A DNA stretch of 64,000 bases from Orbicella franksi (Eukaryota): NCBI GenBank assembly GCA_964199315.1, contig OZ116712.1, forward strand, positions 4,402,001 to 4,466,000, given 5' to 3'. How positions within the stretch are numbered: the first letter of the stretch is position 1; every line of letters begins with the position of its first letter. Under the pieces are notes generated by a model. It worked only from the letters and a program-made list of their open reading frames with translations. It was not told where the DNA came from and ran no database searches. The translations under genes were made by a program, and so were the position numbers. Below, one piece after another: positions 3,412 to 64,000 of the stretch.

Positions 3412-5258
3412 ATGGAGTCCCTTTTGAAAGACCTCAAGAAACATCTTGAATGCTCGATTTGTCTCGATACCTACAACCAACCCAAAACTATATCATGTCT
3501 ACACACATTTTGCTGTCAGTGTTTGGAGAATCATGCAAGAGCCAGCCACAGACAAGGAAAGTTCCGTTGTCCAGACTGCCAAGCGCAAATCGATCTGCCC
3601 GAAGGAAATCGTTTCCAAAGCTTGCCGGACAGTTTTTTTCACAATAGTTTGTTGAGTCTCCTTACCGTTCGACGGAGTGGCGACGGAAGTAACATGGCTT
3701 GTTCCCAATGTAGGAAAAACAACTCTCAGATGTACTATTGCTTTGACTGTGGACGGTTTATGTGCCCAGACTGTTACAACGCACACGAAATGCTAAGCGC
3801 ATCGTTCGAAGGACATAAAGTCACGTCAGTGAAGGAGTTTAAAGCAGAAGATTACGAAGCCTTGCTGAAGCGACAGCCATTTTGTTCACAGCAGTTCCAC
3901 GAGAAAGAAATCACGAGATTTTGCTGTTTTTCATGCCAAGCTTGTGTTTGCCAAATTTGCATAGTCACGGATCACCGAAATCACGACATCGTTTTACTCG
4001 ACAAAGCAGCTCATGACGAGAAACCCAACATCATGTCTGGCGCTGAAATGATCAACGAAAGGGTGAGCGAGCTTATTGAAGTGATTCGACAATTTGAAGA
4101 AACGGCTTCTAAGTTGGAAAACAATGTCACAACCGCTAAACGCGAAGTCTCGCAAGTTGCTGGGCAGATGATCGAAGTGATTCGAGAGCGCGAGCGTGAG
4201 TCCATTATATCACTCGAGACAACACGCGTGACGAGACTTGAGAGAATCAACTCCGCCATCAAGGAAGCTCAGTCTCTGCTCAAACAAATGAAGCAAGCAC
4301 TTGAGTTTGCTAGAAATCTGACAGAAAGAAGCTCAAGCTCAGATATCATGAGGAACAAGGACACTTTGAAACAACGATTTGAAGTATTGGGTGAAATTGA
4401 AGTTCCAAAACATGATGAGACCTCATTCGTGAAATTTACCGCTGCTTCCTCAAAGAACTTGAAATTAGGTTTTATTGAGACAATCCCAAAGGTAGACGCA
4501 AGTCGATCAACGCTTGAAGGACTGAAGCAAACTCTTCAGGCTGGTGTAGAAGCGGTGTTTACGTTATGCCCCCAAACATCTGAGGGGAAGACGAGTAACC
4601 AGCCTGACCTGAAAGATCAAGTTGAAGTTCTTATTGAACCCGCTAAAGATGTTACAAATGTGATTGTTGTTGAGAAAGAGGACGGTAATCTTCAGCTGAA
4701 ATTTATTCCCAAAGTACCAGGCGCCTACAGCATTGAAGTGAAGATCAATGGCGATAAACTTCCTACGTGTCCTTGTTATGTGCGGGTAAAAGAACGTGAA
4801 CTTGTGGTCGTTGGCATTGTTGTAACCGAGTGGGGCAATCATAGGATACAAGTGTTGTCACAAGAAGGAGAAACTATTTTGATATTTGGAGACAGAGGCC
4901 CAGAGAAACTTCACGAACCAACAAGCTGCAGTACTTACAAAAACATGTTTCTCGTAACTGATTGCGGCAATGACTGTATTAAAGTTTTCGATCAGTCAGG
5001 AACTTTCCTGTACAAGTTTGGAAAACAAGGGAATCAAGATGGACAATTTGACTGGCCGTATGGTATGCTTGTAGACAGCTCCAATAATCTTCTTGTATGT
5101 GATCGTTGCAATGACCGAGTTCAGCAGTTTTCTTTAGACGGTCGCTTTACAGGCAAGTTATCACTGATTTACCAGGTCCCGCTGGAATAGCAACAGCGTC
5201 AGGTGGACGTATTCTCGAGACTAGCTCTGAAGCTAACAAAGTATACACATTGAAGTAG
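3412..5258 (+). pseudogene. TRIM-NHL copy 1, probable pseudogene (592-aa ORF 3412-5190)
   Basis: RING, two B-boxes, coiled coil and filamin are intact. Junction at 4815/4816 (gtcgttggc|attgttgta) removes 360 bp relative to copy 2 (10579-10938). A net 1-bp deletion near 5155-5160 shifts the frame to a TAG at 5188-5190. The ancestral stop is at 5256-5258. Confidence 0.85.
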
Positions 5259-5565
5259 TCGTTTCAATATTCAGTAGTTCTCAGTGTGTACAGATACTGT
5301 GTTGAAATGCACGGTCTCTATGACGTCATGTTTATTTAGTGTTATGTCCAAATTAGCATTTGAACTAATCTAGTCAAGTGCTATGATGTAAAGAATTTAC
5401 ATTGAAAAGCCGAAATCATGAAGTAAGGTGTGTGACAAGCGAGTCTAAAAGATTTATCGTTTTCAGTAAAGTGTCAAAGAGACTGTATAGTTTTCTAGTA
5501 GTCGAGGAAGTTTGTGAGCAATAATTGAGGTTAATACTGTTTTCAGATACTGATTTGCTTTATAA

Positions 5566-5876
5566 AGACTGATTTTCACTACAACATAAGCACAAGCATA
5601 AACATTATGGTAGGGGGACGCCTACGACACGAGCATAAGTTCGTAAGCATGCGCAGAATGGATAATTAGCTTATTTTCGATTCCATACCTCCTCGCTACA
5701 GTAAAGCAAGATGGCGGACTTTTGATTATACTTAACCTTACAGCAGCGCGTTCTCACTTCACATAAGCACAAACACATAAAGGACAAAAATTTTTGTTCT
5801 GCTTGTGCTTGTGTTGTGCGCGTCCCCACTTCCGTTATGCTTGTGCTTGTTCTTATGTCGTAGTGAAAAGCAGGCT
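5566..5876. mobile_element. ~310-bp TIR MITE (paralogous copies ~35707-36019, ~57967-58279)
   Basis: Termini agactgattttcactacaacataagcacaagc... and ...gcttgttcttatgtcgtagtgaaaagcaggct are inverted complements, with internal gcacaagcataa/ttatgcttgtgc repeats. Confidence 0.7.
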
Positions 5877-9174: not shown

Positions 9175-11382
9175 ATGGAGTCCCTTTTGAAAGACCTCAA
9201 GAAACATCTTGAATGCTCGATTTGTCTCGATACCTTCAACGAACCCAAAACTTTATCATGTCTACACACGTTTTGCTGTCAGTGTTTGGAGAATCATGCA
9301 AGAGCCAGCCACAAACAAGGAAAGTTCCGTTGTCCAGAGTGTCAAGCGCAAATCGATCTACCCGAAGGAAATCGTTTCCAAAGTTTACCGAGCAGTTTTT
9401 TCCACAACAGTTTGTTGAGTCTCCTTGCCGTTCGTCGGAGTGGCGATGGAAGTAACATGGCTTGTTCCCAATGTAGGAAAAACAACTCTCAGATGTACTA
9501 TTGCTTTGACTGTGGACGGTTTATGTGCCCAGACTGTTACAACGCACACGAAATGCTAAGCGCATCGTTCGAAGGACATAAAGTCACGTCAGTGAAGGAG
9601 TTTAAAGCAGAAGATTACGAAGCCTTGCTGAAGCGACAGCCATTTTGTTCACAGCAGTTCCACGAAAAAGAAATAACGAGATTTTTCTGTATTTCGTGCC
9701 AAGCTTGTGTTTGCCAAATTTGCATAGTCACGGATCACCGAAATCACGACATCGTTTTACTCGACAAAGCAGCTCATGACGAGAAACCCAACATCATGTC
9801 TGGCGTTGAAACGATCAACGAAAGGGTGAGTGAGCTTATTGAAGTGATTCGACAATTCGAAGAAACGGCTTGTAAGTTGGAAAACAATATCGCAACCGCT
9901 AAACGCGAAGTCTCGCAAGCTGCTGGGCAGATGATCGAAGTGATTCGAGAGCGCGAGCGTGAGTCCATTATATCACTCGAGACAACACGCGTGACGAGAC
10001 TTGAGAGAATCAACTCAGCCATCAAGGAAGCTCAGTCTCTGCTCAAACAAATGAAGCAAGCGGTTGAGTTTGCTAAAAATCTGACAGAAAGAAGCTCAAG
10101 CTCAGATATCATGAGGAACAAGGAAACTTTGAAACAGCGATTTGAAGTATTGGGTGAAATTGAAGTTCCAAAACATGATGAGACCTCATTCGTCAAATTT
10201 ACCACTGCTTCTGCAAAGAACTTGAAATTAGGTTTTATTGAGACAATCCCAAAGGCAGACGCAAATCGATCAACGCTTGAAGGACTGAAGCAAACTCTTC
10301 AGGCAGGTGTAGAAGCAGTGTTTACGTTATGCCCCCAAACATCTGAAGGGACGATGATTAACCACCCTGACCTGAAAGATCAAGTTGAAGTTTTGATTGA
10401 ACCCGGCAAAGATGTTACAAATGTGATTCTTAGTGAGAAAGAGGACGGTAATCTTCAGCTGAAATTCACTCCAAAAGTACCGGGCGACTACAGTATTGAA
10501 ATGAAGATCAATGGCGATAAGCTTCCAACCTGTCCTTTCACAGTGCAGGTGAAAGAACGTGAACTCGTTGTCGTTGGCGAGTTGGACTTAAAATTCTTTC
10601 CAGGAGAGGAACCCGGATGGCTGAATGGAATCGCTGTTAACTCAGAAGGCAAGATAGTTGTGACAGATTACTCTGGCGACTATGTTCACGAGTTCGACAG
10701 AGATGGTAACTGTTTAACGAAACGTGGTAGCGAAGGAGCAAATCCCATAAAATTTGGCTATGCGTCTGGCGTTTCCTATGTAAACAAGAACGAGATTCTA
10801 GTTGCAGATCAAGGGAATTATAGAATACAACACATAAATATTCAGACAGGAACTGTTGTGAAAAGCTTTGGAAAATATGGCACAGGAAAAGGAGAGTTTA
10901 AGAATCCAGTTGACGTTTGTTTAGATAATGAAGGACGCATTGTTGTAACCGAGTACGGCAATCATAGGATACAAGTGTTGTCACAGGAAGGAAAAACTAT
11001 TTCCATACTTGGAGACAGAGGCCCAGAGAGACTCAACAACCCAACAAGCTGCATTCCTTACAAAAACATGTTTCTCGTATCTGAAAGCGGCAATCACTGT
11101 ATTAAGGTTTTCAATCTGTCAGGAACTTTCTTGTACAAGTTTGGAAACAAAGGGAATCAAGATGGACAATTTGACTGGCCATATGATATGCTTCTAGACA
11201 GCTCCAATAATCTTCTTGTATGTGATCGTGGTAATAATCGAGTTCAGCAGTTTTCTTTAGACGGTCGCTCCACAGGCAAAACTTTCACTGATTTACCAGG
11301 TCCTACTGGAATAGCAACAGCGCCAGATGGACGTATTCTCGTGACTAGCGATAAAACTGACAAAGTATACATATTGAAGTAG
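9175..11382 (+). CDS. TRIM-NHL E3 ubiquitin ligase (RING-B1-B2-CC-filamin-6xNHL; TRIM71/LIN-41-like architecture), copy 2, 735 aa, intronless
   Basis: C3HC4 RING (CSIC...CLHTFCCQC...CPEC), two B-boxes, coiled coil, filamin fold (FTPKVPGDYSIEMKING) and NHL repeats (P.GIAV...IVV.D..N.RIQ). The ATG at 9175 is homologous in all copies; the track's TTG start at 9058 is not used. Confidence 0.95.
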   Translation: MESLLKDLKKHLECSICLDTFNEPKTLSCLHTFCCQCLENHARASHKQGKFRCPECQAQIDLPEGNRFQSLPSSFFHNSLLSLLAVRRSGDGSNMACSQCRKNNSQMYYCFDCGRFMCPDCYNAHEMLSASFEGHKVTSVKEFKAEDYEALLKRQPFCSQQFHEKEITRFFCISCQACVCQICIVTDHRNHDIVLLDKAAHDEKPNIMSGVETINERVSELIEVIRQFEETACKLENNIATAKREVSQAAGQMIEVIRERERESIISLETTRVTRLERINSAIKEAQSLLKQMKQAVEFAKNLTERSSSSDIMRNKETLKQRFEVLGEIEVPKHDETSFVKFTTASAKNLKLGFIETIPKADANRSTLEGLKQTLQAGVEAVFTLCPQTSEGTMINHPDLKDQVEVLIEPGKDVTNVILSEKEDGNLQLKFTPKVPGDYSIEMKINGDKLPTCPFTVQVKERELVVVGELDLKFFPGEEPGWLNGIAVNSEGKIVVTDYSGDYVHEFDRDGNCLTKRGSEGANPIKFGYASGVSYVNKNEILVADQGNYRIQHINIQTGTVVKSFGKYGTGKGEFKNPVDVCLDNEGRIVVTEYGNHRIQVLSQEGKTISILGDRGPERLNNPTSCIPYKNMFLVSESGNHCIKVFNLSGTFLYKFGNKGNQDGQFDWPYDMLLDSSNNLLVCDRGNNRVQQFSLDGRSTGKTFTDLPGPTGIATAPDGRILVTSDKTDKVYILK

Positions 11383-17580: not shown

Positions 17581-17581
17581 A

Positions 17582-20394: not shown

Positions 20395-20442
20395 GTGACA
20401 TTTGATTGGCTCCAAGCAGACAGTTATGACGTTAATTAATTC
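20395..20442 (+). promoter_or_regulatory. Conserved proximal promoter block, copy 3
   Basis: gtgacatttgattggctccaagcagacagttatgacgttaattaattc. Confidence 0.55.
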
Positions 20443-20505
20443 GGTTTCTAGGAAAACTAAAAATAAAAGCTTATTGCAGTATCACTGAACAAGCGACGCC
20501 TAGCG

Positions 20506-27380: not shown

Positions 27381-27460
27381 GGTTTTCTCGGAAACTAAAG
27401 TAAAACCTTGATGCACTGAGTTGTGTTTCGAGAGCTTCACTAAACAAGCGACGCCTAGCG

Positions 27461-42372: not shown

Positions 42373-42451
42373 TTCGCTTTTCTCGAAAACTAAAGTAAAA
42401 CCTTGCGGCAGGTGTGTTTCGCAAGCTTCCCTAAACAGGCGACGCCTAGCG

Positions 42452-47291: not shown

Positions 47292-47571
47292 CAGGGAAAC
47301 CTGTATTAAGCGGACACCCTCGGGACCTTCCCAAGTGTTCGCTTAATAGATAGAGGGTGTCCGAAAGGTTTATAACAATTTTGCCTTGTTTGTTAATAAT
47401 TAACATTCAACGGTTCCTCTGTACTGTAATAAAGTTCCAGGTTGTTAACGAAGCTATCCAGATTTCAAGTTCGTCAGCTTTCATTACCAACTTTAATTTG
47501 TTTGTGATGATGCCCTTTCCATACAGCAACGATAATGCAGGTACATTTAATTGACTCTTTCAAGGACGTAA
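47292..47571. mobile_element. Truncated third copy of the Tigger-like MITE
   Basis: The left TIR and interior match 25331. Homology ends at caaggacgtaatc. Confidence 0.7.
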
Positions 47572-49923: not shown

Positions 49924-49970
49924 GTGACATTTGATTGGCTCCTTGCAGACAGTTATGACGTTAATTAATT
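49924..49970 (+). promoter_or_regulatory. Conserved proximal promoter block, copy 7
   Basis: gtgacatttgattggctccttgcagacagttatgacgttaattaatt. Confidence 0.55.
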
Positions 49971-50035
49971 AGGTTTTCTAGGAAAACTAAACATAAAAGC
50001 TTGGTGCAGTTTCACTGAACAAGCGACGCCTAGCG

Positions 50036-52242
50036 ATGGAGTCCCTTTTGAAAGACCTCAAGAAACATCTTGAATGCTCCATTTGTCTCCAAACCTACAG
50101 CAAACCCAAAACCATATCATGTCTACACACATTTTGCTGTCAGTGTTTGGAGAATCATGCAAGAGCCAGCCACAGACAAGGAAAGTTCCGTTGTCCAGAG
50201 TGTCAAGCGCAAATCGATCTGCCCGAAGGAAATCGTTTCAAGAGTTTACCGAGCAGTTTTTTCCACAACAGTTTGTTGAACCTTCTTGTCGTTCGACGGA
50301 GTGGCGATGGAAGTAACATGGCTTGTTCCCAATGTAGGAAAAACAACCCTCAGATGTACTATTGCTTTGACTGTGGACGGTTTATGTGCCCAGACTGTTA
50401 CAACGCACACGAAATGCTAAGCGCATCGTTCGAAGGACATAAACTCACGTCAGTGAAGGAGTTTAAAGCAGAAGATTACGAAGCCTTGCTGAAGCGACAA
50501 CCATTTTGTTCACAGCAGTTGCACGAGAGAGAAATCACCAGATTTTTCTGTTTTTCATGCCAAACTTGTGTTTGCCAAATTTGCATAGTCACGGATCACA
50601 GAAATCACGACATCGTTTTACTCGACAAAGCAGCTCATGACGAGAAACCCAACATCATGTGTGGCTTTCAAATGATCAACGAAAGGGTGAGCGAGCTTTG
50701 TGAAGTGATTCGGCAATTTGAAGAAACGGCTTCTAAGTTAGAAAACAATATCGCAACCGCTAAACGCGAAGTCTCGCAAGCTGCTGGGCAGATGATCGAA
50801 GTGATTCGAGAGCGCGAGCGTGATGCGATTATATCACTCGAGACAACACGCGTGACGAGACTCGAGACAATTAACTCCGCCATCCAGGAAGCTCAGTCTC
50901 TGCTCAAACAAATGAAGCAAGCGGTTGAGTTTGCTAAAAATCTGACAGAAAGAAGCTCAAGCTCGGATATCATGAGGAACAAGGAAACTTTGAAACAGCG
51001 ATTTGAAGTGTTGCGTGAAATTGAAGTTCCAAAACATGATGAGACCTCATTTGTCAAATTTACCGCTGCTTCTACAAAGAACTTGAAATTAGGTTTTATT
51101 GAGACAATCCCAAAGGCAGACGCAAAGCGATCAACGCTTGAAGGATAAAGCAAACTCTTCAGGCTGGTGTAGAAGCAGTGTTTACGTTATACCCCCAAAC
51201 ATCTGAAGGGACGATGATTAAGCAGCCTGACCTGAAAGATCACATTGAAGTTCTGATTGAACCCGCTAAAGATGTTACAAATGTGATTGTTGTTGAGAAA
51301 GAGGACGGTAATCTTCAGCTGAAATTTACTCCCAAAGTACCGGGCGACTACAGCATTAAAGTAAAGATAAATGGCGAAAAGCTTCCAACCTGTCCTTTCA
51401 CAGTGCAGGTGAAAGAACGTGAACTCGTTGTCGTTGGTGAGTTGGACTTAAAATTCTTTCCAGGAGATGAACCCGGATGGCTTGATGGAATCGCTGTTAA
51501 CTCAGAAGGGAAGATAGTTGTGACAGATGAGTTTGGCCACTGTGTTTACGAGTTCGACAGAGATGGTAACTGTTTAAGGAAACGTGGTAGCAAAGGAGCA
51601 AATCCCGGACAATTTAGCTATGCGTCTGGCGTTTCCTATGTAAACAAGAACGAGATTCTAGTTGCAGATCAAATGAATCATAGAATACAACACATAAATA
51701 TTCAGACAGGAACTGTTCTGAAAAGATTTGGAAAACATGGCTCAGGAAAAGGAGAGTTTGAGAATCCAGTTGACGTTTGTTTAGATGATGAAAGACGCAT
51801 TGTTGTAACCGAGTACGGCAATCATAAGATACAAGTGTTGTCACAGAAAGGAAAAACTATTTCCATACTTGGAGACAGAGGCCCAGAGAAACTCAACAAC
51901 CCAACTAGCTGCATTCCTTACAAAAACATGTTTCTCGTATCTCATAGGGGCAATAACTGTATTAAAGTTTTCAATCAGTCAGGAACTTTCTTGTACAAGT
52001 TTGGTAAAGAAGGAAATCAAGATGGACAATTTGACTGGCCATATGATATGCTTCTAGACAGCTCCAATAATCTTCTTGTATGTGATCATTACAATAACCG
52101 AGTTCAGCAGTTTTCTTTAGACGGTCGCTTCACAGGCAAAACTATCACTGATTTACCAGGTCCCTTTGGAATAGCAACAGCGCCAGATGGACGTATTCTC
52201 GTGACTAGCGCCACAACTAACAAAGTATACATATTGAAGTAG
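50036..52242 (+). pseudogene. TRIM-NHL copy 7, frameshifted (1-bp deletion at ~51146; ORFs 50036-51148 and 51178-52242)
   Basis: gaaggataaagc versus gaaggactaaagc in copy 6. The span is 2207 bp, one less than 2208. A sequencing error is not excluded. Confidence 0.8.
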
Positions 52243-55200
52243 TTGTTTCAATAATCAGTAGTTGTCAGTTTGTACCGTCGGAACCTGTGTTGGAATGCAC
52301 GGTCTCTCTGACGTCATGCTCAGGTAGCGTTTTTGGAAATTACCATGTGAACTAATCTACTCAAGTATTATGATGGAAAGACTTTAACATTTCAAAGACG
52401 AAATTGCAAGGGGAGCAAGTCTCAAAGATGTCTCGTTTTCAGTGTAGTGTTTTAAAGAAGCTTAACACTTTTCTAACATTCGAGGAGGTTTAGGAGCAAA
52501 ACCAATCCATAATCATGCTTTCCCGGGGGAGGTGGGGAAGGGGGAAAATGTGCACTGCTCTGGATTGACAGGTGGGAAATGCGCAAAGTTGGCGTTAAAA
52601 TCTGAACTTTCAAAACGTAACAAAAACCAAAACCAGAGTTGCCCTCATCAATTTGGTTAGTATAGACGTAGAATAACGCTACAAATTAGGGTTACATGTA
52701 ATACTGTTTTGAAACATTGATTTGCTTTATAACCCCTTATACTTTGTACATTTCGGCTTTGTTTTTGTGAACCCTGGAGTCGTCTGAAAATCATTGGGTA
52801 GGGGTGTGCAGCTGGGACACCGAAACCTTTACCCTCTGCCTTTACCCTATACTAGAGCTTGATCAGTTTGATTTTGCAACGCATTAATGCACCAAAAGCC
52901 CCTAATCGTAGTCCAATACAGGATAAGTAATATCTTACAAAGTCACTTACGACTTTCAATTTCTATTATAGAACCCCGGGTAAAGAACCCTGCTCTAGAC
53001 TAAATTATATATACAGTATACTAGCCACTTTCCCGGGAAATTATAGCCTTTTCAAGACAACTGTCTGATTTCTATGTTGAAAACAAAAGATATGACAGGC
53101 CAACACGGACTCCCCTCGTGAATTGCGATAGCGATGCATTTTAGCCTTCAATTAAATTTTCACTCTAACGAGCGTATCTTTTAGAGATTTGTCTCTCTTA
53201 TATGATATAATCGGAGGTTTAGTCTAGATGCTTTTCCGTTAGTATCGTTTTGTTTGTCCTCCGCCATGTGTTCTTCGGTGTCCGTTGGAGGACAGTAAGA
53301 AGGTGTTTTGGGGGCTCTGTAATCGACATCCTCGTCACCAGATGTACTTGGTCCGAGATATAGCAGTAATTCGTTGTCTGACATCATAGTTGCTTCAGCA
53401 GGACCGCTCGGTTTCGATTCTTCACGAATCTCTTTGTTTGAGGCGTGACAACTTTAAATTAAATGCTACTTAGGGAAAGTTAGAGACGTTTCTCAATTCC
53501 GTTCCCCCTCCAATAGTTGTTTGGTGATCTTTTTATATCAGGATAGTCTGGTGCTGGGATCGAAGTGTTAGCTTTCCCATTGGTCCTCCCCGAAGCGAGA
53601 GGGCCAATGAGGTGCAAGGGATTTTCGATCGGTAGAGCGAGAAGCTAGAGTGTGTTTCTTTGTAAGGCTAAACTGCCTGAAAACCATACCCTTCACAGCG
53701 GCACATACCCATATAGCTTGTCTGATGGGAGTACCCCCTATGGGGAGGGGAGGGGGGCTAAGAACACACCCGAAGCTTTAAGTCACTAAAAGAAGATTGT
53801 TTTCTAAACTCGACTTAAACTTAAACAATTGGAAATGGTCTATTAAACTTATAAATGTAATTTCAATGTTGTGTAGTAAGCCGTAATTGTTCGCAAATGT
53901 ATGGCTTTGAACAGAGCTGAACATATCAACAAGAGTGCTAGTTTGAATAAAATTTTGGGCCCTCAAAGCACTTTGCCTATAATTTTTATCTCTGTTTTGA
54001 AATTCGTAAACTGGTGGGATTCTTGCAATTCATAAACGTGAAGCTACTTTTAATTTGCTTGTTCCGGGTTGCATTTGATATGACCTACCGTAAACTGCCG
54101 CTTATAAGTCTCCCCCCCCCCGCCCCCCCTTGGTTGTAGGCCTATCTACCTTTAAACCAGAAAATACACCCGGTTATAAGCCCCCCCTGATATAAGCCCC
54201 CTAGCTTTCCTTGTGTTGAATTTGTTTTATTATGTTTTAACGCTTAATTACCAGTAAATGAAAAATCTATTTCCTTAGTTTTTGTTTCGATTAAGAAGAT
54301 ATATCAAACACTCGAGACAGTGTTTCATCGGCCAAACACCTCGAATTGCGTCAAAAATACTCCAGTGAGCGTGGTATTTTCAACTCTCTTCTCGGTGTTC
54401 GGATATCCCGATGAAACACTGTCTCTCGTGTTTATATATATTACTTCATAAAATATCATTATATACATGGAACGAAAGTAATGTAGAAAGGCCGTTAATG
54501 TCTCTGGTCCCATGTTGAAAACACTACCTCGGTCTATTGTTGTTAAGGGCCAGGGCTATTGTTATGACTTCTCATCTATTGTTTCATATTGAGAACCAAG
54601 ATAACACCGCGAGAGAAATTTTCTTTGTTCAAAGCACAATGAATGCTGTAGGTTTTCAAAGCTGATTTAGATCCTTGGTTATTTCTAATTCCCACCCATT
54701 GTTTACAATTAAAAAGGATCGTGAAAATGTATTTTAAGTTCTTTTTCCATCATCTTAAAAAGTAGGTCTATTACATCCCGTATGAACGAGATTACACGCG
54801 TGTCACAAGACATATTATAAAATAACAGGGCTACTACGTGCGCTATCATTGGTCGATAGGTGTGTTTAGATGAGAATATGTAAACACTGTTGTGACACGT
54901 ATTTTTTAAGAATAATTTTCTCAAATCAATACCGTACTTTTTCGATGTTTACATAGCCTCAAATTCTCCAAAGGTAGCAAACCCGAGACGTTCGAATTCT
55001 CTCAACCCCCCTCGTGTTAAATTAGGCTATGTAAACACTTAGAAAAAGCTCTAACCTTAGATTGGCCACCATGGTGTTTGCTTTTTCCCTTTTTACAACC
55101 GCTTCATGACACATCGTATTAAAAGTGGCCACATCTTTGGGGGGAGTGTTTGCCTGTTTGTTTGTTTCTTTAATTTTGGGTAGACTGTGCGGTAAATGAA

Positions 55201-55324
55201 AACTACGACAAACATTTCCGATTTTTTAATTCCTTAGAGCCTCTTTACTGACCCCTGGCTTCATATCATCGATGCAAATCGCTCAGAAGACCACCTGAGA
55301 ACACTCTCAGACGTCAATAATTTT

Positions 55325-55372
55325 GTGGCATTTGATTGGCTCCAAGCAGACAGTTATGACGTTAATTAATTC
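55325..55372 (+). promoter_or_regulatory. Conserved proximal promoter block, copy 8
   Basis: tttgattggctccaagcagacagttatgacgttaattaattc. Confidence 0.55.
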
Positions 55373-55448
55373 GCTTTTCTCGGAATCTAAAATAAAACCT
55401 TGATGCAGTTGTCTTTCGCAAGCTTCACTAAACAAGCGATGCCTAGCG

Positions 55449-57659
55449 ATGGAGTCCCTTTTGAAAGACCTCAAGAAACATCTGGAATGCTCGATTTGTC
55501 TCGATACCTACAACCAACCCAAAACTATATCATGTCTACACACATTTTGCTGTCAGTGTTTGGAGAATCATGCAAGAGCCAGCCACAGACAAGGAAAGTT
55601 CCGTTGTCCAGAGTGTCAAGCGCAAATCGATCTGCCCGAAGGAAATCGATTCAAAAGTTTACCGAGCAGTTTTTTCCACAACAGTTTGTTAAGTCTCCTT
55701 ACCGTTCGACGGACTGGCGACGGAAGTAACATGGCTTGTTCCCAATGTAGGAAAAACAACTCTCTGATGTACTATTGCTTTGACTGTGGACGGTTTATGT
55801 GCCCAGACTGTTACAACGCACACGAAATGTTACGCGCATCGTTCGAAGGACACAAAGTCACGCCAGTGAAGGAGTTTAAAGCAGAAGATTACGAAGCCTT
55901 GCTGAAGCGGCAACCATTTTGTTCACAGCAGTTCCACGAGAAAGAAATCACGAGATTCTTCTGTTTTTCGTGCCAAGCTTGTGTTTGCCAAATTTGCATA
56001 GTCACGGATCACCGAAATCACGACATCGTTTTACTCGACAAAGCAGCTCATGACGAGAAACCCAACATCATGTCTGGCGCTGAAATGATCAACGAAAGGG
56101 TGAACGAGCTTATTGAAGTGATTCGACAATTTGAAGAAACGGCTTCTAAGTTGGAAAACAATATCGCAACCGCTAAACGCGAGGTCTCTCAAGCTGCTGG
56201 GCAGATGATCGAAGTGATTCGAGAGCGCGAACGTGAGGCGGTTATATTACTCGAGACAACACGCGTGACCAGACTCAAAAGAATTAACTCCGCCATCCAG
56301 CAAGTTCAGTCTCTGGTGAAACAAATGAAGCAAGCGGTTGAGTTTGCTAAAAATCTGACCGAAAGAAGCTCAAGCTCAGATATCATGAGTAACAAGGAAA
56401 CTATGAAACAGCGATTTGAAGTGTTGCGTGAAATTGAAGTTCCAAAACATGATGAGACCTCATTCGTGAAATTTACCGCTGCTTTTGCAAAGGACTTGAA
56501 ATTAGGTTTTATTGAGACAATCCCGAAGGTCGCAGACGCAAGTCGATCAACTCTTGAAGGACTGATGCAAGCTCTTCAGGCTGGTGTAGAAGCAAAGTTT
56601 ACGTTATGCCTCAAAACTTCTGAAGAGAAGATGAGTAACCAGCCTGATCTGAAAGATCAAGTTGACGTTCTGATTGAACCCGTTAAAGATGTTACAAATG
56701 TGATTGTTGTTGAGAAAGAGGACGGTAATCTTCAGCTGAAATGTACTGCCAAGGTACCGGGCGCTTACAGTATTGAAGTGAAGATCAATGGCGATAAACT
56801 TCCTACCTGTCCTTTTTATGTGCAGGTAAAAGAACGTGAACTTGTTGTCGTTGGCGAGTTGGACTTAAAATTCTTCCCAGCAGACGTGCCTCAAGGGTTG
56901 TGTGGAATCGCTGTTAACACAGAAGGCAAGATAGTTGTGACAGATGAGAGTGGCCACTCTGTTTATGTATTCGATAGAGATGGCAACTGTTTAAGGAAAA
57001 TTGGTTGCGAAGGAGAAAATCCTGGACAATTTAGGAGCCCAGCGGGCGTTTCCTATGTAAACGACAACGAGATTCTAATTGCAGATCAAGAGAATCATAG
57101 AATACAACACATAAACATCCAGACAGGAACTGTTGTGAAAAGCTTTGGAAAACTTGGTGCAGGAAAAGGAGAGTTTAAGAATCCAGTTGACGTTTGCATA
57201 GATAATGAAGGACGCATTGTTGTAACCGAGTACGGCAATCATAGGATACAAGTGTTGTCACAGGAAGGAGAAACTATTTCGATATTTGGAGACAGAGACC
57301 CAGAGAAACTCAAGGAACCATCAAGCTGCATTCCTTACAAAAACCTGCTTCTCATAGCTGATGACGACAATGACTGCATTAAGGTTTTCGATCAGTCAGG
57401 AACTTTCCTGTTCAAGTTTGGAAAACAAGGGAATCAAGATGGACAACTTGACTGGCCGTATGGTATGCTTCTAGACAGCTCCAATAATCTTCTTGTATGT
57501 GATTATTACAATAACCGAGTTCAGCAGTTTTCTTTAGACGGTCGCTTCACAGGCAAAACTATCACTGATTTACCAAGTCCTACTGGAATAGCAACAGCGC
57601 CAGATGGACGTATTCTCGTGACTAGCTCTGAAGCTAACAAAGTATACACATTGAAGTAG
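55449..57659 (+). CDS. TRIM-NHL copy 8, 736 aa, intronless
   Basis: Complete ORF; sister of copy 5. Confidence 0.95.
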   Translation: MESLLKDLKKHLECSICLDTYNQPKTISCLHTFCCQCLENHARASHRQGKFRCPECQAQIDLPEGNRFKSLPSSFFHNSLLSLLTVRRTGDGSNMACSQCRKNNSLMYYCFDCGRFMCPDCYNAHEMLRASFEGHKVTPVKEFKAEDYEALLKRQPFCSQQFHEKEITRFFCFSCQACVCQICIVTDHRNHDIVLLDKAAHDEKPNIMSGAEMINERVNELIEVIRQFEETASKLENNIATAKREVSQAAGQMIEVIREREREAVILLETTRVTRLKRINSAIQQVQSLVKQMKQAVEFAKNLTERSSSSDIMSNKETMKQRFEVLREIEVPKHDETSFVKFTAAFAKDLKLGFIETIPKVADASRSTLEGLMQALQAGVEAKFTLCLKTSEEKMSNQPDLKDQVDVLIEPVKDVTNVIVVEKEDGNLQLKCTAKVPGAYSIEVKINGDKLPTCPFYVQVKERELVVVGELDLKFFPADVPQGLCGIAVNTEGKIVVTDESGHSVYVFDRDGNCLRKIGCEGENPGQFRSPAGVSYVNDNEILIADQENHRIQHINIQTGTVVKSFGKLGAGKGEFKNPVDVCIDNEGRIVVTEYGNHRIQVLSQEGETISIFGDRDPEKLKEPSSCIPYKNLLLIADDDNDCIKVFDQSGTFLFKFGKQGNQDGQLDWPYGMLLDSSNNLLVCDYYNNRVQQFSLDGRFTGKTITDLPSPTGIATAPDGRILVTSSEANKVYTLK

Positions 57660-59344
57660 TTGTTTCAATATTCAGTAGTTTTCAGTTTGTACCGATAGTG
57701 TGTTGAAATGCACGGTCTTTATGACGTCATGTTTATATAGTGTTATGTCTAATTTAGGACTTGAGCTAATCTAGTCAAGTATTATGAGGTAAAGAATTAA
57801 CATTGAAAAGTCGAAACCATGAAGTAAGCGTGTGGGACAAGCGGGTCTAAAAGATTTTTCGTTTTCAGTGAAGTGTCAAAGAAACTGTATACTTTTCTAA
57901 TAGTCGAGGAAGTTTGTGAGCAGTAATTGAGGTTAATACTGTTTTCAGATACTGATTTGTTTTATAAAGATTGATTTTCACTACGACATAAGCAGAAGCA
58001 TAAACATAATGGTAGGGAGGACGTCCACAGCACAAGCATAAGCTCGTAAGCACGCGCAGAAAGGATAATTAGCTTATTTTCGATTCCATACCTCCTCGGT
58101 ACAGTAAAACAAGATGGCGGACTTTTGATTATACTCATCCTTACAGCAGCGCGTTCTCACTTCACATAAGCATAAACACATAAAGGACAAAAGTTTTTGT
58201 TCTCCTTGTGCTTGTGTTGTGCGCGTCCCCACTTCCGTTATGCTTGTGCTTGTTCTTATGTCGTAGTGAAAACCACGCTTAACAGGTTGTTTTTTTGTAC
58301 ATGTCAGCTTTGTTTTTGTAAGATTGAACTGTTTAAAATAAGAAGGTTAACCCCAGGGTAATAGTGATTAGAAGAAGATTGTCATTTTCATGACTTTTTG
58401 AAAAAGCCCTATGAGGTCTGGTAAAATATAACACTAAAATTTAAATTACGTAAAATGATGCTGCAATAACTAAGTCCCGTTTAGGGAGATATTTGAACAA
58501 AAACCATAAGCTTGTCTTATTACATGGTTCACTGTAAAACAAGTTGGTAGTATTTTTTTTAGAACTATTGGAAGTTTTAACATAAACTTCTCAAAACGTA
58601 AACAATTGGACACGGTATAACTTGTAAATCTGTTTGTAATGTTATGTAATGAGGATGTAAACGTAAAGCTAAGAACGTTCAGTCGCATGCAGTCTGAAAT
58701 TTAGCGAAATTTGTGACCAAATTCATTGTTCGTCTGTGAGATAGCCGCCCTTGTCGAAAGAAAAATTCGCAATGTTGTCTCTCGGAAAGGGCGGCTGTAA
58801 CACAGGCAAAATAATTTTTTTTTGCAAATGTTAATGTCGTTGTAGAATGTTTATAGTGGTCGATGCGCTTAGCTACAGCTACCAAGTTCTCAGGCATGCC
58901 ACTTTTAAAAACTGAAAGAAAGAACATCTCAAAATATGCAAATATGCAGCTTTAAACAGAGCTAAACATCCAGAGTGTTGTCATTGTTCTGCTTTCAGCT
59001 GAACTTAGTGCCAATTTGAATAAAATTTTGGGCTACCAAAATATTTTCCTGTAGTTTTGTCCTCATTTGAAGTTCGCAAAGTTGTGGGTGTGGTAGAATA
59101 CATGTACGTGAAATTGCTTTCAATTTGCTTATTCCAGGTTGCATTTAATATGAGCTATAAGAATTTTTTATGATATCTCTCTGTTACTAAGTACGCTGTG
59201 ATTGGTCAATTTAGTGGGGCCTACTCTACTGTGCGACTGGAATGGAGTGGTCCGCCAGTCACCGGGTCAAGAGTATATGTGCGCAAGACCGTGCGTAAGT
59301 GTTCATGGTATTGCCTGCGGGCAACAGAGAATCTTCTGTGTTAA

Positions 59345-61011
59345 ACTGCACCTAACCCCAAAAATGTTTTTTTCGCTAGAACGAATCTACTTATTATTTG
59401 AAATAGTTCTGCGAAAAATTTTTTTGAATTCCGTTAAATCCTCGATTTTCTGTGCCACGACGAAATCTCGAAAATAGCTCCAAAACACCGCCATTTTGTT
59501 TCACGACCGAGTTTGAGGAGAATGGGTCCAGCGGCTCTTGTGAATTTAAAGAAAGATATACTGTACAATTTACTGACGATGATCGGCTAATGGTGCAATA
59601 AAGACGTACTGTAAACGATGGTTGATTTTGTCGAACCGAAACAAGCGAACTGAATCTGTGAGAACCATTGAAGAACTCTCACTGGAATTTGTTCCGCAGA
59701 CTTTCGAACGCTATTTTCATAAATTTTCGGCTTAAAGCTAACCAGCAATTTGTAGAAATACTACCTACAACCTATATCTTCCAATCCCGCAGTATTTATA
59801 ACATAACCGGCAAAGTTGTGTGATCCGGTCATGATCAAGAAGCGTTATACTGATATGTAAATAGATCGCAAATGTACGCCGCTAACCAACACTTATTTCT
59901 CTTTCGATTTAGATGAAAGTCGAAGATTAATCCTCTAGAATTACATGATAACAAAATTGTTAGACTCACAGAGTTTTTCGAAGGTTTGGAAATCAGCAGT
60001 GCGACAAAGATTCTGTGCAATAGCGTCGAAAATATGACCGCGTAACATTATCTGCGGACCGCTTAGGGAACACATCCTTTTCGCTTATCCGACGAATTTC
60101 ACTGCAAACTTTGAGAACAATTTACATTGGTTATTTGGAGTTACGATTTAAAACGTGTGACAATGTGAAATCGGTAATTGTATGAAATGTTTCCTTCCGC
60201 CTTGCTTCCCGCAGCTTCAAAAATACAGGTCCAAACAATACGATTTTCAATCGATCGAAGCCAATGTTTTGGAGGTCATCAAGTCTCGAAAACTGCAACA
60301 CGTACGTCGCTCTTATAAACATGAAGCATTCAACTGAAAGTAAAGCACAAACTGGATTTAACAGAACCTTGACAAAATACATTCTCGGTAAGGACAAATG
60401 TAAACGGGCTATAAACACGCGTGGGAATCTTATGTTTAGTTGACGAAATTACCATCCAAAGCAGTCCTTGAGTTTTCTTTCCTGCTTTTCGTTTGCCTGC
60501 TCCTCCACTTCGTATCTAGCTTTCCATTCCTAATATACAAGCAGCTCGTCCGCAAAGACGTCTTCCCCGTCGTCGCTTGAAATGTTGTAAATTGCTCTCA
60601 AAGCTCTAAGTAGTGAGTTCACAGTTGTCGAACGTGCTCGATCGAAGTTTATTTCGGAGCCTTCCGAATCGAAACTTAACTCTGACTCCAGTGACGAAAA
60701 AGAAATGATTCTGAGACAAAACTTGGACGTTTTAGTCCCAAAATACATCGGAACGATTAGTTTTGCGTTCTATTTTCTCGAGCAAATACAGAGAGTTGAC
60801 TGAGGCGCTATTGTGTTTGGTTCCTGGGTAGACGTCATCAGGTACCGCCGCCCCAGACTCCCTAAAACGCGGTCGTGAAACACTTAATCGCGACTTTAAA
60901 AGGGCATAGAAAATCGAGGATTCAACCAAATTCAAAAGTTTCTTCGCCCAAATGCTTCAAATAAAGTCTAGATTTGTTTTAGCGAAAAAAAACTTGGGGG
61001 TTAGGTGCACT
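59345..61011. mobile_element. Second copy of the Kolobok-like element (1667 bp; 125-bp internal deletion, 5-bp insertion)
   Basis: TTAA|actgcacctaacccc...ggggttaggtgcact|TTAA at the same site as 37128-38914, so it was inherited through the segmental duplication. Confidence 0.85.
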
Positions 61012-62775
61012 TTAAGGAAAAACGTTAACGTAGCATTGTGCTGGTTTGAATATAACCCAGCCAAATTGGTTTCTAGAGTAAACTTCTGTCCTGTCAGCTA
61101 AATTGGCGATTTAAAATTCGCCGCAATGGAGAACTTTAAAGTGTCTAATGTTTTTCTCTGTTTTCTTTTCAGGTAACAAAGGTTTCCAATCTTATTTTAC
61201 GTTTCGCGCACTACTTCGTTACTGATGTGTGAAACAGGTTCGTTAGGTCTGAAGTCAGTATTACGCGTTGTCCCTCCAGACCAGTGGCATTGATATGTAT
61301 ATATCGAAAATCTGTAACCCAATGTGTGTCACGTTTAAACAAACAAACAAACAAACGAACCAACAAACTAGCAAACAAACCTTCCATGCCGGCTCCCTTT
61401 GATAAAGAAGAAAAGAAATGTAAAAGCCCATTAAGAAAATATTGCTCTGGAACCTCTATTTTCATACACCGTTTGAAAGACTCTGTTGTTGCTTATCTAT
61501 TGTTTTGAGAACTAATTAGCTTCTGTTTAGATCGCAATGAATGTTATAGGTTGTTATACTGAGCCGCGCAAGGTCCATCTTTACATCAGTATTTGGAAAG
61601 GAAAAATACATCTTTTTTGTTTCATAAGAATCAGTGTTTTATAAGAATATTGAGGCTGAAATTGGCAACATTTTAAGAATGAGTTTAGAATGCCAATACA
61701 GAGACTTTCTTTAGAACAATTTTTTTTTGTTTTTGATGGAAAATAAAGTACAACAAAATACATGGTGTTTTTAATGATATTCATCTATTATTACGTGCGC
61801 TGTGATTGGTCAATTTAGTTGGTTAAACAATAAGAATATTCCGCCTGGGCATGAAAAATGTGAATTCTTAACTCTTACAAAGAATGAATAAATAAAAGAG
61901 TGCATTTGTTCCCCTTTCTTTACCTCGACCATGGCCTCGTTTCTCCTTACTCTCCCCCCCCCTCCCCCCGCCATTTTGTTACAATTGAGAAAAGTGTGGT
62001 CGATAGGTAATTCGTGTACTTTTCCTTCTTCGCAAAAAGAAAATTACAAAACGTTTTTTCAAAAACTTCATTTATTAATACCTATGTACTAGACTAGACG
62101 AATGATTTGTGTGTAACTACTTCCTGGGTATGAAAAATATCTGTTCTTACAAAAAAGAGTGTTCATCCTTTCTAAGTTTTTTGACAATCTCTGACAATCC
62201 CTAACGGTATGTTTTACTTTGTAGTGATGCTCATATTCATCAGTTCAAGCCGATATAAATGTTGGCTGGCAAGGAGCGAGATATTGGCTTGGGAAAATAC
62301 AATGACTCACTTCGCTGTATGGGGCAACCCGCGCCGAACATTCAGGCCGATAAATGTTAGCTTGCGAAAGCGTACCAGCCCCTTGCAGCGTGCACTAACC
62401 ACAAGCCAAGTCTTGATATGTTAACTTGCGTGAGCATATATAGTAACTTCCGTTATGGACACCTGAATAATAATTTTTTTAAAGCTTAAACGAAATTAAG
62501 AAGCTGGATTTTAGCGATGAATGCAAACAAACATGAAATTAAGCATAGCGTGTCAAACACGAAAGGAGGCATAAAATCCACTCGAAAACCCAACTAAAGC
62601 CCAATCTTCCCATCTATCGGATCTAAACAAGCGCCCAGTCAATTAGTAGAATTGATTGCGATCACTTGACTCTCGTAAACCGACAAACTTATGATTAGCT
62701 GCCAACTTGTTGTGCGCTTCGCGCACACAACAAACTCTAGCGCGATTTGCATTTAACCTAGACATAACTATTTTT

Positions 62776-62822
62776 GTGACATTTGATTGGCTCCAAACAG
62801 ACAGTTATGACGTCAATTATTT
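62776..62822 (+). promoter_or_regulatory. Conserved proximal promoter block, copy 9 (perfect TGACGTCA)
   Basis: gtgacatttgattggctccaaacagacagttatgacgtcaattatt. Confidence 0.55.
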
Positions 62823-62899
62823 CGCTTTTCTCGAAAACTAAAGTAAAACCTTGCGGCAGGTGTGTTTCGCAAGCTTCCCTAAACAAGCGACGCCTAGCG

Positions 62900-64000
62900 A
62901 TGGAGTCCCTTTTGAAAGACCCCAAGAAACGTCTTGAATGCACGATTTGTCTCGATACCTACAGCGAACCCAAAACTATATCATGTCTACACACATTTTG
63001 CTGTCAGTGTTTGGAAAATCATGCAAGAGCTAGCCACAGACAAGGAAAGTTCCGTTGTCCAGAGTGTCAAGCGCAAATCGATCTGCCCGAAGGAAATCGT
63101 TTCCAAAGCTTGCCGAGCAGTTTTTTCCACAACAGTTTGTTGAGTCTCCTTACCGTTCGACGGAGTGGCGATGGAAGTAATATGGCTTGTTCCCAATGTA
63201 GGAAAAACAACTCTCAGATGTACTATTGCTTTGACTGTGGACGGTTTATGTGCCCAGACTGTTACAACGCACACGAAATGCTGAGCGCATCGTTCGAAGG
63301 ACATAAAGTCACGCCAGTGAAGGAGTTTAAAGCAGAAGATTACGAAGCCTTGCTGAAGCGACAACCATTTTGTTCACAGCAGTTCCACGAGAAAGAAATC
63401 ACGAGATTTTTCTGTTTTTCATGCCAAGCTTGTGTTTGCCAAATTTGCATAGTCACTGATCACCGAAATCACGACATCGTTTTACTCGACAAAGCAGCTC
63501 ATGACGAGAAACCCAACATCATGTCTGGCGCTGAAATGATCAACGAAAGGGTGAGCGAGCTTATTGAAGTGATTCGACAATTTGAAGAAAAGGCTTCTAA
63601 GTTGGAAAACAATGTCACAACCGCTAAACGCGAAGTCTCGCAAGTTGCTGGGCAGATGATCGAAGTGATTCGAGAGCGCGAGCGTGAGTCCATTATATCA
63701 CTCGAGACAGCACGCGTGACGAGACTTGAGAGAATCAACTCCGCCATCAAGGAAGCTCAGTCTCTGCTCAAACAAATGAAGCAAGCAGTTGAGTTTGCTA
63801 GAAATCTGACAGAGAGAAGCTCAAGCTCGGATATCATGAGGAACAAGGACACTTTGAAACGACGATTTGAAGTATTGGGTGAAATTGAAGTTCCAAAACA
63901 TGATGAGACCTCATTCGTCAAATTTACCGCTGCTTCTTCAAAGAACTTGAAATTAGGTTTTATTGAGACAATCCCAAAGGTAGACGCAAAGAGATCAACG
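62900..64000 (+). CDS. TRIM-NHL copy 9, partial (RING to end of coiled coil; continues beyond the window)
   Basis: ATG at 62900 (MESLLKDPKKRLECTIC...), collinear with copy 1 with no net indel to the window end. It is absent from the ORF track because there is no stop in the window. Confidence 0.9.
   Translation, partial: MESLLKDPKKRLECTICLDTYSEPKTISCLHTFCCQCLENHARASHRQGKFRCPECQAQIDLPEGNRFQSLPSSFFHNSLLSLLTVRRSGDGSNMACSQCRKNNSQMYYCFDCGRFMCPDCYNAHEMLSASFEGHKVTPVKEFKAEDYEALLKRQPFCSQQFHEKEITRFFCFSCQACVCQICIVTDHRNHDIVLLDKAAHDEKPNIMSGAEMINERVSELIEVIRQFEEKASKLENNVTTAKREVSQVAGQMIEVIRERERESIISLETARVTRLERINSAIKEAQSLLKQMKQAVEFARNLTERSSSSDIMRNKDTLKRRFEVLGEIEVPKHDETSFVKFTAASSKNLKLGFIETIPKVDAKRST

Follow-up and report, generated by a model that had tools for sequence, protein, structure and literature searches.

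A tandem TRIM-NHL gene array of the coral Orbicella franksi with diversifying selection at the top face of the NHL propeller

In a tandem array of nine TRIM-NHL genes of Orbicella franksi, strong diversifying selection acts on about 14 codons in the BC and DA loops, which form the top face of the NHL propeller, the RING/B-box/coiled-coil module is under purifying selection, and the gene bodies are mosaics arising from frequent short-tract gene conversion among paralogs, which plays a dominant role. With selection acting at the ligand-binding face, the array has evolved in the manner expected of a receptor repertoire. TRIM-NHL proteins are textbook examples of conserved developmental regulators, and a large, fast-diversifying, receptor-like TRIM-NHL family would represent a new recognition scaffold for invertebrate immunity.

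Organization of the array

The window, i.e. the entire 64-kb stretch of DNA analysed, is free of N runs and gaps and contains nine homologous single-exon TRIM-NHL genes in tandem, all on the + strand, with starts at positions 3412, 9175, 20506, 27461, 33189, 42452, 50036, 55449 and 62900. Their coding sequences align over 2211 columns with indels limited to four short ones and a 360-nt deletion, and the NHL alignment of the full-length copies holds a single one-codon gap. Three of the nine copies are defective. Copy 1 (3412..5190) is a pseudogene or truncated copy, having lost NHL blades 1-3 through the 360-nt deletion and acquired an early stop from a 1-nt deletion at alignment nt 2107. Copy 4 (27461..29668) has a full-length ORF with GTG in place of the start ATG, probably a recent start loss, and copy 7 (50036..52242) is full length apart from one frameshift that separates its coiled-coil and filamin parts, where 1 nt is deleted near 51148 (alignment nt 1114). 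Intact genes are copy 2 (9175..11382, 735 codons, NHL at ~10567-11379), copy 3 (20506..22710, 734 codons, NHL at 21889-22707), copy 5 (33189..35399, 736 codons, NHL at 34584-35396), the mosaic copy 6 (42452..44659) and copy 8 (55449..57659, 736 codons), a recent duplicate of copy 5. Since copy 5 has no alignment gaps, its residue numbers equal alignment codon numbers. Copy 9 (62900..64000) is cut by the window end after its first 367 codons. A TTG-started ORF from 9058, overlapping copy 2, is an artefact of a bacterial ORF caller.

Approximately 140 nt immediately 5' of the ATG are kept in all nine copies, as exemplified by positions 33048..33188 (+ strand) ahead of copy 5. The block contains ATTGG (reverse CCAAT), TGACGT and the A/T-rich element TAAAATAAAA, and is a candidate core promoter with 5'UTR. 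Elsewhere in the window, intergenic ORFs of at least 110 aa gave no Pfam matches and ARAGORN found no tRNA; AATAAA or ATTAAA within 600 nt of the stop codon is absent for most copies, an uninformative absence.

Domain architecture and fold

Pfam matches, with the coiled coil placed by position, give the order RING, two B-boxes, coiled-coil region, filamin and six-bladed NHL. The RING (zf-C3HC4 and zf-RING_UBOX, residues 14-56) retains the zinc ligands C14, C17, C29, H31, C34, C37, C53 and C56 in nine of nine copies, and the two zf-B_box stretches (~95-140 and ~155-195) have invariant Cys/His columns. A region of ~150 residues (~200-345) occupies the candidate coiled-coil position between the B-boxes and the C-terminal domains, with Filamin matched at 361-456, followed by NHL repeats; there was no Pfam match to a SPRY (B30.2/PRY-SPRY) domain, the C-terminal domain being NHL. 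By this domain content (RING, B-boxes, filamin and NHL), the array genes are class-VII-type TRIM E3 ligases, and the intact RING together with purifying selection (dN/dS 0.26) suggests that they have E3 ubiquitin-ligase activity.

An AlphaFold2 model of the copy 3 NHL part (pLDDT 95.3) has 24 strands in 6 blades, with the N-terminal strand closing blade 6 in a Mei-P26-like manner. Its best Foldseek matches are TRIM71, Thin, LIN-41 and TRIM2/3 (TM 0.85-0.88, identity 28-32%), of which TRIM71/LIN-41 are the nearest solved structures (TM 0.88, 30-32% identity). Phmmer and profile alignments of the NHL part to TRIM71/LIN-41 and Brat PDB chains are local and blade-shifted.

Variable positions and selection on the NHL top face

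The initial annotation had proposed that substitutions in copies 2-8 cluster at short loop positions of each blade, and its loop residues are reproduced in the translated alignment: GWLNG/EWLDG/GWLDG/EWLHG/EWLYG/GWLDG/QGLCG and DYS/DDS/DYF/DAN/DDS/DEF/DES in blade 1, DQ-G/W/G/C/G/M/E in blade 2, TE-Y/Y/C/W/S/Y/Y in blade 3, SES/SDT/SDT/ADD/SGR/SHR/ADD in blade 4, DRG/DSD/DHY/DEK/DSD/DHY/DYY in blade 5, and GPT/RPS/RPI/SPA/RPS/GPF/SPT with SDK/SFE/SAT/SSE/SFE/SAT/SSE in blade 6. The clustering itself is borne out by at least three amino-acid states at 22 of 86 DA and BC sites as compared to 9 of 182 sites in the rest of the NHL (Fisher p 2.6e-6), and all 12 NHL sites with four or five states lie in top loops or top-side strand ends. 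That these loops constitute the ligand-binding top agrees with PMC4015489, where the bc and da loops are defined as the NHL propeller's top surface and ligand binding there is demonstrated. Variable residues are not scattered over the surface of the pLDDT-95 model, as all selected codons fall in BC/DA loops or top-side strand ends, with the faces assigned from DSSP strand order and loop topology rather than 3D distances. Tyr, Ser, Asp, Gly and Glu, and not Arg or Lys, are abundant at the selected positions, and the net charge of the top loops is -7 to 0 in each of seven copies, by a crude residue count and not a surface potential.

Along the gene, dS is flat (0.13, 0.14 and 0.11 in RBCC, filamin and NHL, respectively) and dN is 0.035, 0.075 and 0.093, with dN/dS climbing from 0.26 in the RING/B-box/coiled-coil part through 0.53 in filamin to 0.83 in NHL. 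Homogenisation of the 5' half by gene conversion is ruled out as the source of the dN gradient, as dS is equal across regions. The description of the RING/B-box/coiled-coil part as almost invariant was overstated given ~5% nucleotide difference, although the part is conserved down to its zinc-ligand columns. When NHL codons are divided into a-priori structural classes, dN/dS is 1.26-1.51 in top loops, as compared to 0.51 in bottom loops and 0.57 in strands.

The expectation that loop codons exceed a dN/dS of 1 once recombination is partitioned was indeed upheld, as site models favour positive selection in NHL only. On recombination segments, 2dlnL is 56.9 for M1a vs M2a and 57.7 for M7 vs M8, and full optimisation yields 58.1 (p 2.4e-13) with omega ~10 at 5.9% of sites; as controls, filamin gives an LRT of 0 and RBCC of 9. 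The 14 candidate codons from NEB posteriors are all on the top face, with at least one in each BC loop. These models used custom GY94-F3x4 maximum-likelihood code on seven sequences and five recombination segments, and over most of NHL omega under F3x4 exceeds that under NG86 (1.2 vs 0.83). As copies 6-8 arose recently from copies 3-5 by block duplication, the seven sequences cannot be counted as independent samples. Tree-free tests, which are free of recombination bias, agree with the site models: a hypervariable class defined from other corals has omega ~3.5 in the array with dN exceeding dS in 21 of 21 pairs, and for sites defined in the array, all 15 paralog pairs taken from four other coral assemblies give omega of 1.9-4.7. 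Measured against local dS, omega at selected sites is 3.0 (p 3e-11, 8 disjoint pairs). Codons adjoining the selected ones have synonymous divergence ~1.4-2x higher, and hence short-tract conversion or multinucleotide mutation contributes; part of the loop excess may be old variation that was shielded from being homogenised, and not frequent new substitution. Since local dS is raised only to this extent and omega relative to it is still ~3, hypermutation of loop codons is rejected as the sole cause.

Segmental duplication and gene conversion

A ~22-kb three-gene segmental duplication accounts for block A (20388..40325, + strand), with copies 3, 4 and 5 and their spacers, and its duplicate block B (42321..62418, + strand), with copies 6, 7 and 8. 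Intergenic DNA of the two blocks is 2.2% diverged overall (local range 0-2.6%, with many 300-nt windows at 0-0.7%), and gene bodies are 5.0% diverged. This excess of divergence in gene bodies within a young duplication supports gene conversion, for which evidence also comes from a change-point test, a mosaic copying model and alleles shared among copies. Homoplasy remains after the five-segment partition, indicating recombination finer than the segments used. Homology between the blocks begins within a gene, and copy 6 at the junction is chimeric, with an upstream region of copy-2/9 type, as is expected from unequal crossing-over. In its coding sequence, the 5' ~460 nt are copy-2-like, nt 666-1235 are 0.5% from copy 7 and the NHL part is nearest to copy 3. 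Between recent duplicates, 6-11 of the 14 selected codons have already diverged, with 11 differing between copies 5 and 8.

Related genes in other corals

Variability peaks at the same positions in 68 homologs from other corals, the 30 highest-entropy columns all lie on the top face, and as many as 18 residue types occur at the ~14 selected sites. Similarly spaced tandem arrays, broken copies included, are also found in other coral assemblies, where they lie among retrotransposon and THAP ORFs, and databases hold more than 1788 relatives at E <=1e-10. Earlier records include the expansion of NHL-repeat and B-box orthogroups in merulinids (PMC11639872), an NHL gene restricted to scleractinians whose Ka/Ks in Acropora is >1 and whose expression rises upon symbiont uptake (PMC7783167), and a TRIM71-like orthogroup with Ka/Ks ~1.1 (PMC9145168). 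The excerpts of these reports present gene counts or whole-gene Ka/Ks, and contain no top-face site pattern, conversion mosaicism or array structure; full-text searches of a limited literature library returned no account of hypervariability on an NHL face.

A proposed germline-encoded recognition repertoire

The array is a birth-and-death TRIM-NHL family with diversification of the top face. New variants arise by tandem and segmental duplication, short-tract conversion among paralogs reshuffles blade loops into mosaic genes, and favoured substitutions at loop codons add further variants, with copies lost alongside gains, three of the nine being defective. On balance, the array probably serves as a repertoire of intracellular recognition proteins encoded in the germline. 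The dimerising ubiquitin-ligase scaffold would stay constant, each paralog presenting a different binding surface, and the repertoire would be directed at diverse or fast-evolving ligands. Most plausibly, such ligands would be viral, other microbial or symbiont proteins that become marked by ubiquitination, which would imply a role in immunity or symbiosis. A bolder version, which we hold as tentative and somewhat short of an even chance, is that stony corals independently built a repertoire resembling those of TRIM5 and finTRIMs on the NHL propeller, with dozens to hundreds of germline paralogs sharing one ligase scaffold, six blade loops recombined like cassettes and honed by positive selection, and ubiquitin tagging of proteins from viruses, bacteria or Symbiodiniaceae. 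If true, this would add a branch not described before to the innate immunity or symbiont sorting of cnidarians.

As a receptor-like family, the array would provide concrete candidates for how coral cells discriminate viruses, pathogens or algal symbionts. As its seven near-identical proteins differ mainly at ~14 mapped surface residues, it lends itself readily to domain swaps and pull-downs. It also offers a clean natural case of gene conversion and selection jointly shaping the binding surface of a repeat fold.

Alternative explanations

The paralogs could instead have diversified in RNA specificity, with their top faces recognising different RNA motifs or hairpins, for example of viral, transposon or endogenous mRNA origin, as LIN-41/TRIM71, Brat and Mei-P26 do. 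The RNA-binding NHL domains of TRIM71/LIN-41 being the nearest solved structures, and the binding of RNA by Brat on the same top surface (PMC4015489), are in keeping with such a role; however, the top surface of RNA-binding TRIM-NHL proteins is electropositive (PMC4015489, PMC9070667), and the neutral-to-acidic coral loops, with selected positions poor in Arg and Lys and rich in Tyr, Ser, Asp and Gly, make RNA an unlikely ligand and incline us towards proteins.

TRIM-NHL proteins of model animals are known to act on endogenous targets, which lends some weight to subfunctionalised paralogs targeting co-duplicated or selfish, transposon-encoded host proteins, omega above 1 then reflecting intragenomic co-evolution or conflict. 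The retrotransposon and THAP ORFs around arrays of other corals would fit, and ligand identity is beyond the reach of selection tests. We nevertheless consider this rather improbable, as the continuous turnover at selected sites, with their many residue types and rapid divergence between duplicates, and the frequent gene loss would be more typical of a host-parasite arms race.

A different kind of objection is that blocks A and B represent two haplotypes of a single three-gene locus assembled in tandem, making the pairs 3/6, 4/7 and 5/8 highly polymorphic, MHC-like alleles. Their intergenic divergence is within the range generally known for within-species heterozygosity, but the gap-free window, the intragenic start of A/B homology with chimeric copy 6, and the similarly spaced arrays in other assemblies leave it a low probability, and the selection result stands whichever status the blocks have. 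Lastly, decaying copies under relaxed constraint, artefacts of gene conversion or alignment, or local loop-codon hypermutation could be invoked given the proportion of defective copies, the pervasive recombination and the somewhat higher dS beside selected codons, but such non-adaptive causes are hardly credible and already largely refuted, as relaxation is unable to give omega above 1 and the tree-free omega is 3-4, also against local dS, purifying selection holds in the remaining NHL and in the RBCC (0.26-0.57), the NHL alignment is nearly gapless, and four other assemblies show these sites again.

Comparison with known systems

The class VII TRIM-NHL proteins TRIM71/LIN-41, TRIM2 and TRIM3 share with the coral genes the domain order, the NHL fold and the ligand face made of bc and da loops. 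They are, however, conserved genes with one or few copies each, whereas the coral genes are single-exon, present in many tandem copies, under diversifying selection and without basic top loops. With nine copies in 64 kb, the large number of database relatives and positive selection in NHL, the array does not correspond to a conserved low-copy orthologue of TRIM71/LIN-41 type. Oculina relatives carry the NCBI name 'TRIM45-like', a best-hit label that does not denote orthology. Vertebrate TRIM45 is a class X protein with RBCC and filamin but no NHL, unlike the coral copies with their complete NHL propeller. TRIM45 has been placed in subfamily C, comprising classes VII and X (PMC3503706).

In evolutionary mode only, the array resembles MHC, KIR and plant NLR clusters, as generally known for their birth-and-death evolution, short-tract interparalog conversion, positive selection limited to residues that contact the ligand, and neutral diversity that is higher beside selected sites; these are unrelated protein families, whereas the coral genes are predicted to encode cytosolic E3 ligases. 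A further comparison is with primate TRIM5alpha/TRIM22 and teleost finTRIM/btr, well-known tandem multigene families with pseudogenes in which, as in the coral array, a constant RBCC is joined to hypervariable, positively selected C-terminal loops. The likeness is evolutionary; recognition by TRIM5alpha and finTRIMs resides in a B30.2 beta-sandwich and that of the coral proteins would reside in a six-bladed NHL propeller, whose variability, unlike theirs, is periodic, each blade loop contributing one or two residues. Fish TRIM repertoires are treated in PMC3137616. The pattern in the coral array is thus a TRIM5/finTRIM-like diversification built on the NHL propeller.

Organization of the TRIM-NHL gene array

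ORF listing and repeat finding over the whole window revealed nine homologous units on the + strand (copies 1-9, numbered 5' to 3'), whose ATGs lie at 3412, 9175, 20506, 27461, 33189, 42452, 50036, 55449 and 62900, the codon at 27461 (copy 4) being GTG. A unit consists of one unbroken ORF of about 735 codons with Pfam domains for a C3HC4 RING, two B-boxes, a filamin repeat and NHL repeats, a predicted layout that is that of class-VII TRIM-NHL proteins, and the nine CDSs align over 2211 columns nearly free of gaps. Three of the nine copies are defective: copy 1 by a 360-nt deletion (blades 1-3) together with a 1-nt deletion and a premature stop, copy 7 by a 1-nt deletion near 51148, both evident in the CDS alignment, and copy 4 by the GTG in place of its start ATG, while copy 9 is incomplete due to interruption by the window end. 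The ORFs at 9058 and 42335 begin at TTG only because bacterial start rules were applied, and their N-terminal extensions are spurious; among ORFs of 110 aa or longer in the spacers between copies, none matches a Pfam family. The closest database relatives are 84% identical, and only proteins of the stony coral Oculina patagonica, labelled 'TRIM45-like' and 76-77% identical, carry a name, which places the source of the DNA among the scleractinian corals.

About 140 nt located 5' of each ATG are kept in 9/9 copies (e.g. 33048-33188), and this block, which includes ATTGG, TGACGT and the A/T-rich box TAAAATAAAA, is a plausible candidate for a shared core promoter. Farther upstream, the copies split into three classes, (1, 5, 8), (3, 4, 7) and (2, 6, 9), which do not match the relationships of the coding regions. 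Just upstream of copy 1, inverted arrays of a 21/42-nt subrepeat (TCACGGCAAAACAAAATTAAC) at 1724-1945 and 2549-2734, about 600 nt apart, resemble a foldback-type element or long terminal inverted repeats with internal subrepeats; the window has 9 matches to the subrepeat (0 expected), none of them elsewhere. In the spacer between copies 2 and 3, a borderline Rfam tRNA match at 11851-11911 (+), with 29.2 bits against a gathering score of 29 and no ARAGORN call, is probably a tRNA-derived SINE fragment.

Arrays in other corals likewise mix intact and broken copies, with a spacing of 6-10 kb, and one contig carries family members separated by 160 kb, an LTR retrotransposon and a THAP ORF being interspersed between copies. 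Between TRIM-NHL copies, an intact-looking LTR-retrotransposon pol ORF of 1386 aa (RT, RNase H, integrase) was observed at L001:4072-8232 and a THAP-domain ORF at L004:16427-16948, L001 and L004 being stretches from other coral assemblies. In Oculina patagonica CM126645.1 (stretch L003), two public gene models, one at 10001-22439 and the other at 20196-32439, each cover two adjacent tandem copies; these models are chimeric with false introns, and plain ORFs give three complete single-exon copies.

Positive selection on the top face of the NHL propeller

The initial annotation had listed variable motifs blade by blade, all of which are found in the translated alignment, and had described the N-terminal RING/B-box/coiled-coil (RBCC) region as almost invariant. 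The latter holds for the zinc-ligand columns, which are all invariant, but with a nucleotide divergence of about 5% the region is conserved rather than invariant. The copy-3 NHL was modelled with AlphaFold2 (pLDDT 95.3, pTM 0.92) as six four-stranded blades (24 strands), blade 6 being closed by the N-terminal strand. From the DSSP of this model, residues were classed as strand, top loop (D-to-A, B-to-C) or bottom loop (A-to-B, C-to-D) independently of variability, with the top face assigned by strand/loop order; bc and da loops of NHL propellers form the top surface by definition, and in Brat the ligand is bound at this surface (PMC4015489). The proposed clustering of NHL changes at top loops was indeed recovered among copies 2-8, as sites with at least three residue types comprise 22 of 86 top-loop positions vs 9 of 182 elsewhere (p 2.6e-6), and the seven of these that carry the 'strand' label all sit at the top-side end of a strand, as its first or last residue.

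Nei-Gojobori estimates for the 21 pairs among copies 2-8 gave dS 0.13, dN 0.035 and dN/dS 0.26 for the RING/B-box/CC region, 0.14, 0.075 and 0.53 for filamin, and 0.11, 0.093 and 0.83 for NHL. Since dS is equal across the three regions, the excess in NHL is specifically nonsynonymous. Within NHL, dN/dS is 1.26 in top loops (1.51 vs the NHL-wide dS), with dN>dS in 19/21 pairs, 0.51 in bottom loops and 0.57 in strands, using the structure-defined classes. Recombination breakpoints were located at nt 317, 1235, 1552 and 2134 by a change-point search that scored all 945 topologies by parsimony (263 steps, compared with no fewer than 281 in any of 100 permutations of site order), and site models were fitted with our own GY94-F3x4 likelihood program using a separate tree per recombination segment. 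The positive selection anticipated earlier was obtained in NHL after this partitioning, with 2dlnL of 56.9 (M1a vs M2a), 57.7 (M7 vs M8) and 56.6 (M8a vs M8), and 58.1 for M1a vs M2a with all branch lengths re-optimised (p 2.4e-13; 5.9% of codons at omega ~10). In the controls, M1a vs M2a gave 2dlnL 0 for the filamin/linker and 9.0 for RBCC (p 0.011; about one site). By NEB posteriors, from a small sample, NHL codons 485, 500, 501, 548, 569, 595, 639, 686 and 687 exceed 0.95 and codons 482, 530, 571, 712 and 727 fall at 0.5-0.95, with alignment codons numbered identically to the residues of copy 5. When mapped on the model, 14/14 are BC/DA loop residues or first residues of A strands, as the initial annotation had predicted, and every BC loop holds at least one.

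Tests free of recombination bias led to the same result. The highest-entropy columns were defined in 68 homologs from other corals only, and the top 30 all lie on the top face (30/30), with up to 18 residue types per column. In the window copies, the top 20 of this external class have dN 0.44 vs a gene-wide dS of 0.125 (omega ~3.5), with dN>dS in 21/21 pairs and a lowest single-pair Fisher p of 3e-8. Reciprocally, the 14 window-defined sites were examined in 12 further copies from arrays of Oculina patagonica and three ENA coral assemblies, where their dN/dS is 1.9-4.7 in 15/15 within-assembly pairs (p<0.05 in 14/15), with bottom loops at 0.12-0.64 and strands at 0.35-0.55. At codons flanking the selected ones (+-2), pS is raised about 1.4-2x (36 pairs), and selected-codon dN is 3.0x the dS of these surrounding codons (eight disjoint pairs, p 3e-11). 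The external-site, reciprocal and local-rate tests agree on omega >1, and neither hypermutation of the loops nor a loss of constraint can therefore account for the pattern. Positive selection thus targets about 14 top-face codons, a pattern of diversification conserved across corals, with a variable propeller face on a constant putative ligase scaffold under purifying selection.

Segmental duplication and gene conversion

Self-comparison identified 20388-40325 (copies 3, 4 and 5) and 42321-62418 (copies 6, 7 and 8) as a 22-kb segmental duplication. This duplication could be a haplotype artefact, but copy 6, a junction chimera of the duplication, and the absence of gaps in the window (no N runs) speak against that. 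Intergenic DNA of the blocks is 2.2% diverged, with numerous 300-nt windows at 0-0.7%, whereas gene bodies are 5.0% diverged with dS of 0.04-0.15, far above the intergenic value. Point mutation after duplication cannot exceed intergenic divergence in this way; therefore, judging from these divergences, sequence from other paralogs must have replaced the coding regions through gene conversion. For about half of the differences between duplicate pairs, both alleles occur in other window copies; a copying model resolves each gene into 7-15 tracts of ~10-1200 nt; and the nearest neighbour of every copy shifts along the gene, all of which agree with such conversion. Copy 6 itself is a mosaic, resembling copy 2 at nt 1-463, differing by 0.5% from copy 7 at 666-1235, and resembling copies 3 and 4 in NHL. 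Within the blocks, otherwise 97-100% identical, 25454-26262 vs 47419-48900 is 15-50% diverged with many 35-144-nt indels; the segment is locally scrambled or replaced, and may be a repeat array or an insertion. The ~1.6 kb at 40326-41960, following the first block and without a counterpart between the second block and copy 9, is an insertion or deletion located where the duplication unit ends.

Blade loops are also exchanged: the BC4 motif SDT is common to adjacent genes 3 and 4 and BC4 is similar in adjacent genes 6 and 7 (SGR/SHR), while BC5 and BC6, unlike BC4, track the duplication pairs. Selected codons already differ in the young duplicates at 6/14 (3/6), 6/14 (4/7) and 11/14 (5/8), often by 2-3 nucleotides per codon. 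Between copies 3 and 6, differences bunch in adjacent codons (484/485, 568/569, 638/639, 660/661 and 669-672), often with a synonymous change paired with a nonsynonymous one. These clusters and the raised local synonymous divergence suggest that the loops undergo short-tract conversion or multinucleotide mutation. The slight synonymous excess beside selected codons fits short-tract conversion, and would also fit old variation shielded from homogenisation, as at MHC. Duplication and gene conversion generate variants, and the family evolves by birth and death.

Relation to known TRIM systems

The nearest structures to the copy-3 NHL model are those of TRIM71/LIN-41, Thin and TRIM2/3. In published RNA-binding TRIM-NHLs, the top surface is basic (PMC4015489, PMC9070667), whereas a crude residue count gives a top-loop charge of -7 to 0 in copies 2-8, and Tyr, Ser, Asp and Gly are frequent at the selected positions; these features lean weakly towards protein ligands. 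We infer that the paralogs bind different, non-self ligands and ubiquitinate them.

NHL and B-box expansions are reported in corals (PMC11639872), as are a whole-gene Ka/Ks >1 for a coral NHL gene whose expression is induced when symbionts are taken up (PMC7783167) and one of ~1.1 for a TRIM71-like orthogroup (PMC9145168). Within the literature covered, a full-text search found no description of site-specific NHL top-face diversification or conversion mosaicism. The coral genes have the architecture that defines class-VII TRIM-NHL, and are not orthologues of TRIM71 or TRIM45 in any useful sense. Their evolutionary logic is like that of TRIM5alpha and the fish finTRIMs, but they are not members of that group, because they lack a B30.2 domain.
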